Source: Entomortierella parvispora E1425 (taxonomy: Eukaryota; Fungi; Mortierellomycota). From it: DNA of 64,000 bases. The translations under genes were made by a program, and so were the position numbers. Below, piece after piece: positions 44,663 through 52,715 of this stretch; the stretch's first letter is position 1, and the number at the start of each line of letters is the position of its first letter. The stretch covers positions 62,001 through 126,000 of the forward strand of contig BQFW01000011.1 of NCBI GenBank assembly GCA_020891255.1, in the 5' to 3' direction. The notes below the pieces were generated by a model that was given only the letters and a program-made list of their open reading frames with translations, was not told where the DNA came from and made no database searches.

Positions 44663-47173
44663 TTATCCGCTTCGTCGCCTTTTACGCATGACTTCGTTGA
44701 TCTCGTCCTCCCTCCCTTTAGACTCCTTGGTTCTTTGTTGATCAACATCAAGAGATCTGGGTCGCTTTTGAAAGTGCCTTGTGAATGAACTTCTTCGGTG
44801 TCCCAGAAAATCGGGGTCGTCAACGGCTCCTCGATTCATGTTGCAGAAAAGTGTTGGCTTGGCATACCATTCAAACTTTAGAGCAGTTTCCGATCCTTGC
44901 TTTTCTTCATCTTCACTGCAGCTCCTGCAGCTCTTACAATGGAAATTTTCACCCCATTTGATGGCTCGAAACCAGGTTGTGTCGCCGTGCTTAAGGATAC
45001 AGCTCTCGCAACATTTCAACTGACATGGCAGCTTCTGGTAATTGTACTTATTAATACTGGACTTCTTAGTAGTCTTGTGTCGAGGTTGCCTTGGATGCAG
45101 ACAGTGCAGGGTCATCAAGTTCGTTCGAGTAGTCTCGCACTCAGAGCACATTATCTATATGAGGAATAAACTTTTAGTATTAGACCAACTTCTACGGCAA
45201 TCAAAGAATATTCTCCTACCTTTTTCTTGCTACCACCTTTCTCACGTTCACGAAATAAACGGTATCGTGCATAGGCGACTGTTGCTGATGATAGGACCGG
45301 GTCAATCGACGAATGGCACCTAAGTAAAATAAAGAAGTGTAAGTTGGGTAGAGCCCATTCTTGTGATAAGAAAGGCTCACTGCATGATTACTTACTGAAC
45401 ATTCCAAGGCTTGACTATAATTTTTTTTAACCAGCTCAAGGACTTTTGGAGTTCGGCTACTCTCTTGACAGACATCGCAAATAAAGAAATCGGGAAATCC
45501 ATTCGAAAGCATTGGCGTATTACCAAGTCTGACGTATCTCTGTGTGGGCATCCTCTTCCTCTACCAAAGCATTCCATGCAAAGTAGATAGGGCTTCGTTC
45601 TGGGGTGATGCTTGTTTCCACAAACAAGGTGTCGATTCCAGATATCCGCCTGACAGAATGAACAAACTAGAGTCAATGTCTCCCCGCCTTCCACAGTGGC
45701 TGGCTCCTGAAAGATGTGATCATCGGGGAAAGATAGCTGCCGTCTTCCTTCGATATGTTTCACGTCAATCCAATCGTCATACAAGATCCTTCCGAAAGCC
45801 TCAAGACAAACCATAAAGCTCTTCAAAAAAGAGTCTGACCTTTGGAGGTTCAAACGAGGACATCCTTCAAGCACTGCTGCATACACTGCAGCTTTCACTT
45901 TGTACGCTTCCGGACGGGCAATCCTAAAATCAACGCAGCGAGTATCAGTATCAAATAATTACCCGAAAAGTCTGCAAAGATATAAGCATACTCTCGGTAT
46001 CTTGGAAGCACATTTTCGATGGCATTCAGGGCAGTTTTGGGAGTTATCCGGTTCCAAGCGATCCTCACTGTAGCTTTTCCCTATTCTCCAAGACTCGTCA
46101 TCAGTTATCGCCTAACAAATAAAAAAAAGTACGGTATCATAAATATACCTTATTGTACACCTGATGCGGAGCCATTGGAGGAAGAATGACTAAATCGCCT
46201 GGACGTTGATCTACTCTGTAAAAATCGATTCCAGATTCCAACATCTGATCCACTGTGGCAGAGTACTTCTCTTGCTCAAAGAATTTCCCCCAGGAAGCCC
46301 ACGCTCGTTTCACCTTGTCGTAATCTCGAGGTGACGCAATATACCACACTGACGAAGAGTCTGAGGCATACTTTGGTGAGTATCATAACATGGTTATCAA
46401 ACTGAGCAAAAAAATTGTTTCCAGCTGTTTACCTAAGTCTGCCCAAGTCATTATATTGTGGCCAATTGATCCGCAATGATCAAACTGACAGGGCGTCCAA
46501 GATCCATGGCCCCCGATGTAACTCATGAGATTACTGGACGATACTTTCGGGTTCTCCTTAAGCCTCTTGTCTAAAATAAAGCAAATTGTAAGAGAGAGAG
46601 GTACCCTTAAAGTCTACTCATTGAAGTGTCCAACAACCTACTTAGATCAAATGGACCACAGAATGTCAACTCTTCCGGTAGAAGATCCGTCAGAAAATTA
46701 TCCCATGTTTTCGGTATTTGATCTTCATCCTTCCAGTAATATGGGCAGTCCTCTTGTCCCAAAGACCGAAGAAACTCCTTCAGTTTAATGGTCCTGTCTT
46801 CCATTGTAATGTGATCTCGAACAGTGATCGTTCCTATTTCAGTAAACAGTTAACCTTTGTCTCTCTTTTTAACATTCTCATAGACACCATATCACCTACT
46901 GCTCTCATTATGTGTAAAGCGATTGAAATGCCTTGATATCCCGTTCATCGAAAACAGATCCTCGGCTTTATCCTCCCAGATGTCTTCAAGATTCCAATCG
47001 GATATAACAATTGGTAGTTCATCCACCTCAATAGCTCTCCTCACTCTTTCAATCACGTTGTCCCTTGGAAGACTGGCGCTCAAACGCTCTGGGGTCTTGA
47101 AGCCGTGGTCCACATTCTCTCCTGAGCGAGTGGTGCTTAAAGTCTCAAGTAATTCGAAATGGGAGCCGTCCAT
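44663..47173 (-). CDS. Multi-exon JmjC DMM-1-like protein (paralog 2, copy b); open reading frame, first iron His replaced by Gln
   Basis: Exons join in frame: MDGSHFE...ELPIVISDW / YYWKDEDQIP / NLMSYIGGHGSWTPCQFDHCGSIGHNIMTW / SSSVWYIAS...QRPGDLVILPPMAPHQVYNK / RIAWNRITP / CSFCQADIWNRHLVC...YLLCMECFGRGRGC / ATVAYARY / CSECE...CCESC...FHCKSC...NRGAVDD. The last few splice junctions were not fully resolved. Confidence 0.85.
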
Positions 47174-50100: not shown

Positions 50101-52715
50101 AAACAACAACCTTTGTTGGGCCTCCAGAGTTATTTTGGGTTATCAGCTCATCGACAGTTCGCTCGGCCCAGAAGACAAAATGGACATGAGGCGCTCTTCT
50201 TTGCTGAACCTCTGTGACCCAGGCATAGTCCTTCACCTTGCCAATCACCTTTGGAGCCCATTTCGAGAGAATGTATATAAGGACACGGTGCCATTCCCTG
50301 TTGTAGGCTACACAGAACAAGGGAATGTCCCGAGTGTCCTGTCTCGGAGTAGTAAATAACCCCTTGAAAGTCAAGCTGTTCAAGTCCACGGACCACGTCA
50401 TGAAGATCTGTGGCTCTCCCAATTCCTCCAAAAGGGCGCGGAGTCTCTTTCCCAGATTGACCTTGTACGCAGGGCTCGTCCTGATGATCTGGGGGATGAC
50501 TACCGTGTCCCTCTCGCGTTGGCCCCACGCTAAAGAGAGCAAATACAAAAAAAAAATGCCAATTTTTTTATAGTCATCCCGCCTTTTTTTTCCCCATGCA
50601 AACAAAAGAAAAAAAAATCCTTGACTCCTTACCCATTCTGAGATCTCCGGCAGTGGTAGCCCACCCTTGCCGCTTTGGATAGACGGCCCGCATCCTGTAT
50701 CCATAGACTGTATTTTTGATGGCCTAATCCTCCATAAAGCAGACAAGCCGCATATTGGAGGCAAAAAGTCGATCAAAGTGGAGCAACCTGTACTTTGCAT
50801 GCACCTTTATACTGAATTGCTGTGCTTTCCCCGGTCGCTCATTTTCTTCATCCTCCACGTCCATATCCACATCAGAATCTTCGTCGTCATGGTCGTCAGA
50901 GCCGTCAGAGTCGTCAGGGTCGCTGTTGATGCTGACGTCCTCGCCCTAGTCGGGACCCAGGCACAGACTGTCCAGGTCTTCTGGTTCAAAGTGAAATGGT
51001 TCAAATTCTGGAACCTCCTCTGCATCAGCGTCTACGACCTCTTGCTCCCCTTCAGATTCCATTGGAATGTCCTGTGCCTGCACAACCTCTGGCATCTGTC
51101 GCATGTTTGTCTTGTAATGGTCCAACTTGAAGTCACTATGCCCTTACGGAAAGAGATCGGGAAAGAGATTGAGCATCAGCGCGTGGGGACTCTTGAAGAT
51201 TACTCCCGTGTCGTCCCCTACATTCACGCCTGCGATCAAGTTCTCCATCTGCACGTCTGCCACCTGCCCTAGAACCTGGATCCATGCCTGCACAAAACAC
51301 TCCTTGGAAATTCAGTTGGCCCGGATGCTCGGCCTGCCCAGTCCCAATGTTCACAAGGGCCTCCCCAATTTGCTCCGGCATGGCTGGTACTGGCGGACAA
51401 TTCAGCCACTCTGGATTGTGGACACGGAGCCAGTTCCACGCCCTGATGATGCGATTCCGGTCGGCCGGGGGTATAGTGAACGAACGAGTACATGCCTGCA
51501 TTGGATTTGAGCGATAGTCTTGATCGGTAGATCGAAACATGTCCACTGACGCATGGAAAATACAAGGACTGACTAGGCACGGAGGGCATCCAGGAGCTAA
51601 AGGTCATGACCCGACACAGGTATCGAAAATCGCTCCAGTACAGTCCTCTGAGCGCCACTGGAACGTTTTCCACAACTTTGCCATGCTCATCCACCCGTCT
51701 CAGAAGGTTCCCCCAGTTCTCATTGACAAAGGCCATCTAGATTGAAACATACAGACTGTTAATATATACATGCGGCCTAGTCAAAGTCAATGCTTTCTTT
51801 TTTTTTGGAAAAAAAAAGAGGACACTCATACCCATTCCAATGATTTGTTGGACATATTCTGGCGAGACTTGCACGCCGTGAGGTTGTTTCTTTTCCTTGA
51901 TGGTTGGACATTGTATTGCAAACAAGGTCATTGTACAGCGTCAAGATCAAAGGCTGGGTCCTGTTGCAGTGCTTCTACTACAATCAGGGGCACCGTCACT
52001 TCCCGAAAGAGGATCCGGTAATAAAAATATTCAGGGGGACATTCTCCAGACTGGCCCTGCATGTCATCGGATGGAGTACTGGCGGTGCCCGTCGTTGGCG
52101 CCGGCGTCGTTGTGGTGGTGGCGGTGACGGTCCTTGTTCAACCATGGCCGATGCATTCTCCTCATTGTCGCTGCCATTGTCATTGCCATCCTCTGCTTCC
52201 TAGGTGTCCGACAGCAAACCCGTCAAGGGCGCAGAGACTCTCTGGAGTCCTCGATAGACAGCGCCGATCCAAGCTTCTCCAGCTGCTCCATACTAGAGTC
52301 GCCACTGCTGGGATATCTATATGCATAATGACAGTAGAGTCGGTTGTTAAGTTGACAGCAGCATCCCCCAAAGCCAACTAAAAGACAACCAACCTACCCC
52401 TGGTGCGATGCAAACGACCTCGAGCCGAAATGATCTTCCTGACCATCTCCATGACTCTGTAACAATCATCCCTGCATGACATGCAACCCTGATACGTCGT
52501 CAATGTCGTTGTCGCCGTCGTTGCTTGCAAGTCCTTTTCGAAATGTGCACAGGCATTGACTATTGATGAATCGAATAATAATTAAGACATGAGCAAACCT
52601 CCATTGGACCACATCATTGGCTCATTGGCCACCCAAGTACCTTCTCTGTTGTGTCGTGTTGGTCTATGAGATAAAGGACGATCAAAGGCAGCAAGGGTAG
52701 AGTAGATATAAAAAG
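47174..52715 (-). mobile_element. Helentron/Helitron2-type element copy B (RepHel, helicase frameshifted) plus JmjC spacer
   Basis: Rep motifs in ORF 49430-50800: PQIFMTWS, EVQQRRAPHVHFVFW (HUH), NAYNPYILKICRSNMDIQ, YLHKYMSK. PIF1 in 47691-49190 (TGTGKS, LDESSMVS). Homology with copy A continues to about 52715. Confidence 0.93.

Follow-up and report, generated by a model that had tools for sequence, protein, structure and literature searches.

JmjC-C lies directly downstream of a degenerate Helitron

We analysed a stretch of 64,000 nucleotides from the fungus Entomortierella parvispora (GCA_020891255.1, contig BQFW01000011.1, positions 62001-126000), hereafter the window, in which a gene encoding a JmjC protein, JmjC-C, adjoins the Rep and helicase (RepHel) part of a rolling-circle transposon of the Helitron type. 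An earlier reading of the DNA, the original prediction, took the pair for a Helentron that carries a DMM-1/Epe1-like JmjC gene as an anti-silencing system. All positions given below are those of the window, the first part of which (1-13952) is matched at 100% by the locus fetched for an annotated E. parvispora protein. The locus in question spans 44663-52715 and is called copy C; copies of its parts elsewhere (A, B and E) were found by self-comparison of the window DNA. Its features are as follows.

44663-47173, minus strand: JmjC-C, an intact gene assigned to the DMM-1 family as a paralog, 674 amino acids (model guided by ortholog P0041; Pfam JmjC)
46485-46487, minus strand: codon CAG (Gln) at the first Fe(II)-ligand position (QFD...H), where relatives have the His of HxD
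47174-47544, minus strand: CT-rich upstream region, putative promoter and 5′ untranslated region of JmjC-C
47545-47678, minus strand: two 67-nucleotide tandem units just 3′ of the helicase stop codon, assigned below to the upstream repeat of the JmjC gene
47680-47753, minus strand: interval in which the 3′ terminus of Helitron copy C should lie; the other copies diverge at about 47750
47691-52715, minus strand: Helitron copy C, degenerate RepHel (Helitron_like_N, PIF1), from Pfam and homology with copy A; the 5′ limit is approximate

The gene model was built junction by junction, guided by the Podila verticillata ortholog P0041. It consists of eight exons on the minus strand (47173-46900, 46833-46642, 46570-46433, 46360-46149, 46080-45992, 45923-45396, 45319-45220 and 45154-44663), separated by seven GT-AG introns of 65-76 nucleotides, and encodes 674 amino acids with no stop. 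The JmjC domain was detected by Pfam in the open reading frame (ORF) and exon at 46140-46382 (E 4.6e-08) and also in the orthologs P0041 and P0042. Both Pfam and the gene model confirm that a spliced JmjC gene lies directly downstream of RepHel on the same strand, as originally predicted. The alignment likewise bore out the predicted order of motifs, which JmjC-C has in common with its relatives: G.NIM, SS.W, PP.APHQV.N, AWNR, C..C..D.WN, C..C...GRGC and a C-terminal Cys cluster. At the first iron ligand (HxD) His is present in all 13 of the aligned relatives, and copy B has the codon CAT (His) at this position. The second His (PHQV) is retained in JmjC-C, so that the intact protein lacks only part of the HxD/E...H iron triad of an active JmjC dioxygenase, namely the first ligand.

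Two side observations belong here. About 100 bp below the JmjC-C stop, at 44437-44557, the summed contig depth is ~1000-1500 in two strains, where ~80-110 corresponds to a single copy, and marks a high-copy dispersed repeat. A weak match of 54 amino acids to the Cys-rich block of the protein was observed at 20891-21052 and is probably unrelated.

Upstream of the gene, Helitron_like_N was identified in the minus-strand ORF at 49430-50800 (Pfam, E 6.5e-13) and PIF1 in the minus-strand ORF at 48388-48978 (Pfam, E 1.1e-09). A Rep (HUH) domain thus precedes a PIF1-type helicase on one strand, which is the arrangement of a Helitron-like element, and the RepHel homology is repeated in copies A, B and E. 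RepHel C has decayed: an in-frame stop interrupts it at 49430-49432, and both the helicase and the N-terminal part are split into overlapping ORFs that are out of frame with one another. Homology between A and C ends near 52700 and 47412, and the other helicase copies part from C at ~47750. From the window copies, few of which are full, neither terminal inverted repeats nor a CTRR-type end could be defined, and no inverted 10-mers join the two element ends beyond CT/GA low complexity. For comparison, HLE1 elements end in a 5′ TC and a 3′ hairpin with CTRR, with A/T insertion, and HLE2 elements in short terminal inverted repeats, with T/T insertion; an autonomous Helentron (HLE2) encodes an apurinic-apyrimidinic endonuclease (Exo_endo_phos) domain, and DUF6570 is a marker of HLE2 (PMC11417382). 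Pfam gave no Exo_endo_phos match in the RepHel ORFs of copies C, A and E, in which the ORF ends after the helicase. For DUF6570, the N-terminal ORFs of copies C and A gave no match at E up to 1, a weak negative since these ORFs are degraded. With neither the endonuclease domain nor DUF6570 in the RepHel ORFs, we have not retained the label Helentron.

JmjC-C is related to DMM-1-type proteins

For searches of large databases and of structures, single exons and the ortholog P0041 were used in place of the spliced 674-amino-acid protein. The largest exon returned only 39 matches among 1.8 billion representative proteins, and the full-length matches are Mortierellaceae proteins with JmjC followed by zf-4CXXC_R1. 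In a sequence search of the PDB, one exon matched KDM3B marginally (E 0.17) and had no other match, and full-length P0041 matched nothing. In a maximum likelihood tree, which is without an outgroup and has long branches, JmjC-C falls together with MVEG_08312 of Podila verticillata and a protein of Mortierella claussenii (support 100/100). Sister to this C-like group is a D-like pair with very long branches, which includes EMPS_07774. The C-like and D-like proteins together make up a long-branch clade (100/99) within a Mortierellomycota group (96/94), beside the canonical JmjC and zf-4CXXC_R1 clade. Ascomycete proteins of the same architecture, among them that of Trichocladium, a member of the Sordariales, form a separate clade, and the canonical Mortierellaceae proteins match it (Saitoella E 4e-61). 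Neurospora crassa was not among the 120 ascomycete proteins listed by a word-based search from the Saitoella homolog.

The zinc finger itself is altered. For zf-4CXXC_R1, Pfam was blank at E up to 5 in the C-like and D-like proteins. Using hhalign, the C-terminal Cys cluster could be aligned over 49 columns to the first part of the canonical Mortierellaceae zinc finger (probability 89%, E 2.4e-06). In JmjC-C-type proteins the last Cys pairs of zf-4CXXC_R1 are absent. On these sequence comparisons JmjC-C is a diverged, fast-evolving paralog of the DMM-1-type family, on a branch specific to the Mortierellaceae. The predicted DMM-1-type character is broadly upheld by the spliced JmjC, the Cys-rich block and the grouping with Mortierellaceae JmjC and zf-4CXXC_R1 proteins, and requires the correction that the C-terminal zf-4CXXC_R1-like cluster is truncated.

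The architecture of an N-terminal JmjC and a diverged zf-4CXXC_R1 includes Neurospora DMM-1 (Honda et al. 2010, as cited in PMC9023284 and PMC10538959), according to PMC10538959. A further criterion for this type of protein is a boundary function with HP1-dependent placement at heterochromatin edges. With DMM-1 and the fungal JmjC and zf-4CXXC_R1 proteins, JmjC-C shares the N-terminal JmjC with ..HQV.N and WNR motifs, the C..C..D.WNR...C..C...GRGC Cys-rich block and, behind it, a C-terminal CxxC cluster, and in sequence it is related to the ascomycete proteins with these domains. It differs from them in being a long-branch paralog so far in few Mortierellaceae, in having Gln as first Fe ligand in the E. 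parvispora strain, and in length, since JmjC-C-like proteins have 650-675 amino acids and members of the DMM-1-type family 750-1400. Schizosaccharomyces pombe Epe1 and Arabidopsis IBM1 are also JmjC proteins, and both limit heterochromatin. Epe1 is without Cys-rich modules and is a functional analogue only. IBM1 likewise pairs zf-4CXXC_R1 with JmjC (PMC10538959), in an order reversed relative to the DMM-1-type proteins. DMM-1 is described in PMC9023284 as a JmjC protein with cysteine-rich domains for which demethylase activity was not detected, and the same holds for Epe1 (PMC9023284). As both are reported to be without demethylase activity, a non-catalytic role would be plausible for JmjC-C, and if it acts at all, it probably does so as they do, as a non-catalytic host chromatin factor.

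The gene and its upstream repeat occur without the Helitron

Between the helicase stop codon and the JmjC-C start lies a spacer that comprises the tandem units and the CT-rich region. The 67-nucleotide unit is present twice in C, twice in B and once in A, in each case right behind the helicase stop, and within the window the motif is confined to these three copies. Directly upstream of the Podila verticillata ortholog we found five tandem units of 52 nucleotides (locus L004, 9568-9827) that are homologous to the 67-nucleotide unit; the eight units aligned have 24 invariant columns and a core without gaps. In Podila a CT-rich stretch likewise lies between the repeats and the ATG, and contigs of strain X4/X5, which is RepHel-free, match parts of the CT-rich region. 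Because the 67-nucleotide unit is homologous to the five-fold repeat of the Podila ortholog, the spacer is, as far as this homology goes, the JmjC gene's own upstream region.

Every exon of JmjC-C matches Podila MVEG_08312 and the M. claussenii protein, at 41-73% identity and for most exons at 58-73%. The RepHel ORFs found no match in the 17-22 kb loci around the two orthologs (5-10 kb to either side), and neither Helitron_like_N nor PIF1 was present among the called neighbours of these orthologs. Synteny around the two is limited to one weak shared neighbour.

Some observations on these neighbourhoods are given here. In Podila a D-like paralog (L004 13559-15950, minus strand) lies tail-to-tail with the C-like gene at a distance of 1.1 kb, and the paralogs are therefore neighbours in two genera. 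An unannotated gene in the window (15600-19980, minus strand), with a weak RRM match, has 26% identity over 310 amino acids (E 4e-24) to a 711-amino-acid M. claussenii ORF that lies 5 kb from the JmjC ortholog. The window homolog is seemingly interrupted by a repeat and helicase fragment at 16.1-16.6 kb.

Copy number was approximated by the summed depth of Logan contigs, which are assembled and hence give a rough measure only. In the sample behind the assembly, single contigs have a depth of ~75-90. The summed depth was 87 in the last JmjC exon and 165-285 in the spacer and the other parts of the gene, as against 570-960 in the 3′ half of the helicase and 300-630 in Rep. By this rough measure the source genome contains ~1-3 copies of the JmjC gene and ~7-11 of the helicase. 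The count of JmjC against RepHel that had been proposed originally thus gives most helicase copies without a JmjC gene.

Contigs of strains X3 and X4/X5, which have the same species label as the window, were matched at identities of at least 80%. Each has a single JmjC contig, at 94% identity in X3 and 92.7% in X4/X5, and at this threshold X4/X5 have the gene without RepHel. In the X4 contig five of the six listed gaps are 1-nucleotide indels, all of them in predicted introns, and the sixth is a 3-nucleotide insertion in exon 1; two further gaps are unlisted. Since the 1-nucleotide indels all fall in introns, although introns make up 19% of the gene, the frame of JmjC-C appears to be preserved across strains. 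In X4/X5 the contigs end within the CT-rich region and leave the 5′ flank of copy C uncovered.

Partial copies of the locus within the window

The remaining copies, and a second JmjC gene that adjoins one of them, are listed here.

1292-3919, plus strand: JmjC-D (EMPS_07774, P0040), 660 amino acids, second diverged paralog, directly upstream of copy B
4344-5744, plus strand: copy B helicase fragment, 5′-truncated
5745-6255, plus strand: copy B spacer, two tandem units and the CT-rich region, nearly identical to C
6256-7451, plus strand: JmjC-B, a pseudogene fragment of exons 1-5 that is frameshifted in exon 1 (+2) and exon 3 (-1)
16211-16598, plus strand: small helicase fragment of 0.4 kb, sharing the 5′ truncation junction of copy B and the X repeat
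25116-30330, minus strand: Helitron copy A, a decayed RepHel that contains an internal inversion (self-comparison)
25116-25301: last ~190 bp of copy A, a piece of the JmjC upstream region with one tandem unit and part of the CT-rich stretch
63046-64000, minus strand: Helitron copy E, its helicase part, cut short by the end of the window; its 3′ tail differs from the equivalent of ~47753

Window positions 4574-7451 (plus strand) correspond to 48846-45981 (minus strand) at 95.5% over 2884 bp. The claim that the helicase, spacer and JmjC recur in the same order therefore stands at 4344-7451 as regards the order and the near-identical spacer, but the gene in copy B is truncated after exon 5 and has two frameshifts. 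No remnant of its exons 6-8 was found elsewhere in the window. Copy A, as had been noted, keeps the start of the spacer and that alone (25116-30241 against 47412-52514, 86-88% identity); it is followed by unrelated DNA with no JmjC, and an OPT transporter gene ends 360 bp away.

The divergence between B and C is uneven. The two copies differ at 3.0% of exon positions and 10.2% of intron positions (Fisher p 2e-06), and the exon changes comprise 15 synonymous and 12 non-synonymous differences. In the spacer there are 3 differences in 517 nucleotides, and none at all over 47100-47549. Taken together, the difference between exons and introns and the identical patch indicate that the duplication is old, that at least one of the copies was under selection for a time, and that gene conversion across the spacer followed recently. 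The near-identity of the two spacers is probably due to this gene conversion.

Several smaller repeats and rearrangements accompany the copies. An X repeat of ~185 bp (82% identity) occurs at 4161-4343, 42929-43113 and 16211-16325. It lies 1.55 kb downstream of JmjC-C, and both copy B and the 16-kb fragment have it directly against their truncated helicase. The recurrence of the copy B truncation junction together with this repeat at 16211-16598 suggests that the region was duplicated piecemeal. A 76-bp tandem repeat lies on both sides of paralog D (926-1158 and 4056-4157) and again at 16072-16216 beside the helicase fragment. Relative to copy C, copy A contains a 250-bp internal inversion at 26921-27169. 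ORFs of a piggyBac-type transposase (DDE_Tnp_1_7, Pfam E 3e-14; 7447-9127, minus strand) start exactly where the JmjC-B fragment ends, and an ORF with a weak match to a DDE_3 (Tc1/mariner-type) transposase (61993-62853, plus strand) lies directly beside copy E.

Origin of the arrangement

The junction between the helicase end and the JmjC locus is common to A, B and C, which suggests that all three derive from one arrangement of a Helitron beside the repeat. Our preferred explanation, to which we give a probability of roughly 0.7, is that JmjC-C is a host gene, that a Helitron landed upstream of it, and that Helitron and flank were then co-duplicated. We infer the following order of events. 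The RepHel element would have come to sit immediately upstream of the JmjC tandem repeat in the E. parvispora lineage, and its later copies would have included differing amounts of the JmjC-locus DNA beside it. Copy A would have taken along ~0.2-0.3 kb of the promoter and copy B the promoter with at least five exons, at least 1.7 kb, whereas C has the whole gene. The mechanism may have been 3′ read-through in rolling-circle transposition or ordinary segmental duplication, with patchy gene conversion between B and C afterwards. This would have left one intact JmjC gene of the C type, kept in frame across strains, which lost its first iron ligand (His to Gln) in the E. parvispora strain.

A number of points weigh against this explanation. 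In A, B and C alike, JmjC-locus DNA is found on the 3′ side of the Helitron, which fits read-through capture, and so the Helitron would have mobilised at least parts of the JmjC locus. Copy B adjoins paralog D, as the C-like and D-like genes adjoin in Podila, and C could therefore be a moved copy; a weak homolog of the gene near the M. claussenii ortholog is found 11 kb from B. The zero contig depth over 47800-52400 in X4/X5 applies at identities of at least 80%, and a RepHel more than 20% diverged could escape. It should also be considered that the Helitron termini are not fixed, that contig depth is only a rough proxy for copy number, and that the tree is without Neurospora DMM-1 itself.

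These neighbours raise the question of which locus is the native one. If it were B, beside paralog D, Helitron read-through would have moved RepHel with a complete JmjC gene and its tandem-repeat promoter to C, and the native copy would have decayed. We consider this course unlikely, and just as doubtful its corollary, that the moved JmjC-C replaced the original and stayed under selection despite the missing iron ligand. The adjacency of C-like and D-like genes in Podila and of D and B in the window speaks for it, as does the homolog (26%, E 4e-24) of the M. claussenii ortholog-neighbour ORF near B, but the orientations differ, the genes being convergent in Podila and in tandem in the window, and the homolog is inverted. 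A, B and C have the same 5′ part and 3′ extensions of differing length, as read-through predicts (PMC4289320), and the B-C intron divergence (10%) is close to the A-C divergence (12%), suggesting one period of activity; against this, a search below 44663 revealed no 3′ end for such a unit, the 5′ half of the Helitron is absent from B, and there is no sign that favours transposition over duplication. The comparison with known gene capture by 3′ read-through (RTM1), as in the cap genes downstream of RepHel in Pleurotus ostreatus HELPO1 (PMC4289320), is mixed in the same way. Here too RepHel is followed on its own strand by host-like DNA, and the copies share a 5′ part and differ in the length of their 3′ flank. 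Unlike the HELPO1 captures, the JmjC gene is a normal gene in other genera with one intact copy here, and with undefined termini segmental duplication may also account for the copies.

That the RepHel family carries JmjC as cargo against H3K9me or DNA-methylation silencing, as VANC serves VANDAL, is the reading originally proposed, and we now regard it as highly improbable. The same-strand adjacency seen twice and the DMM-1-type architecture would fit such a role, and there are precedents in the SET domain of the Phytophthora proto-Helentron HelenPi572 (PMC11417382), which illustrates that Helitron-like elements with chromatin domains exist, and in genes downstream of RepHel in fungal Helitrons (PMC4289320). 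VANC of Arabidopsis VANDAL21 is the model for transposon anti-silencing (PMC5735166). The idea common to these cases is a DNA transposon carrying a chromatin-acting factor, and non-coding tandem repeat motifs also have a part in VANC systems. In VANC and HelenPi572 elements, however, the gene lies inside the element ends in many copies, which is apparently not so for JmjC-C. Cargo should be found between the ends of the element in several independent copies; here there is one intact copy, and the second linked copy cited in support, B, is a broken fragment. The claim that the gene travels with the element is further contradicted by the orthologs without RepHel in two other genera, by the spacer, which appears to be the gene's upstream repeat and also occurs there without RepHel, and by the excess of helicase over JmjC copies together with X4/X5. 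RepHel C and A are pseudogenes, and the intact protein is short of one iron ligand. The same evidence fails to support a transposon-encoded anti-silencing system. In the literature searched, no JmjC-bearing Helitron was described.

It is also conceivable, at very long odds, that the 52/67-nucleotide repeat is the 3′ tail of the Helitron, the C-like JmjC gene having stood behind it since before Podila and Entomortierella split, with later loss of RepHel in Podila. The unit does lie directly behind the helicase stop in A, B and C, and some Helitron-like elements have subterminal tandem repeats. A tail of this kind is hard to reconcile with a unit confined to A, B and C in the window, with a depth over 47400-47600 of ~2.5 copies in the source genome, with a divergence of only 12% among RepHel copies as against 30-40% in protein sequence among the JmjC orthologs, and with M. 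claussenii, which has the gene without the repeat. We therefore return to a Helitron that landed beside a host gene as the best account of the locus.

Other features of the window

Two relics of 28S (large subunit) ribosomal RNA with internal gaps were detected at 32520-33122 and 40370-40571, both on the minus strand (Rfam, 399 and 175 bits). They lie far from any ribosomal DNA array, amid transposon pieces. An ORF of 447 amino acids made up of leucine-rich repeats (LRR_6) is found at 33503-34846 on the plus strand, with a periodicity of 84 bp in its DNA.

Implications

Had the cargo reading been true, a demethylase-like anti-silencing gene would have been seen for the first time in a rolling-circle transposon. 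What the evidence favours is a more familiar case, in which a Helitron lies beside a host gene and the flank has been partly co-duplicated. Should C be a moved copy, a Helitron would have relocated, and for a time carried, a heterochromatin-boundary factor. The tandem upstream motif, conserved between genera, may be a regulatory site. In the Mortierellaceae, the C-like and D-like genes make up a small pair of fast-evolving DMM-1-type paralogs within transposon-rich DNA. One of them, otherwise intact, has undergone a natural change from His to Gln at its iron site, which fits the view that proteins of the DMM-1/Epe1 type may work without catalysis.

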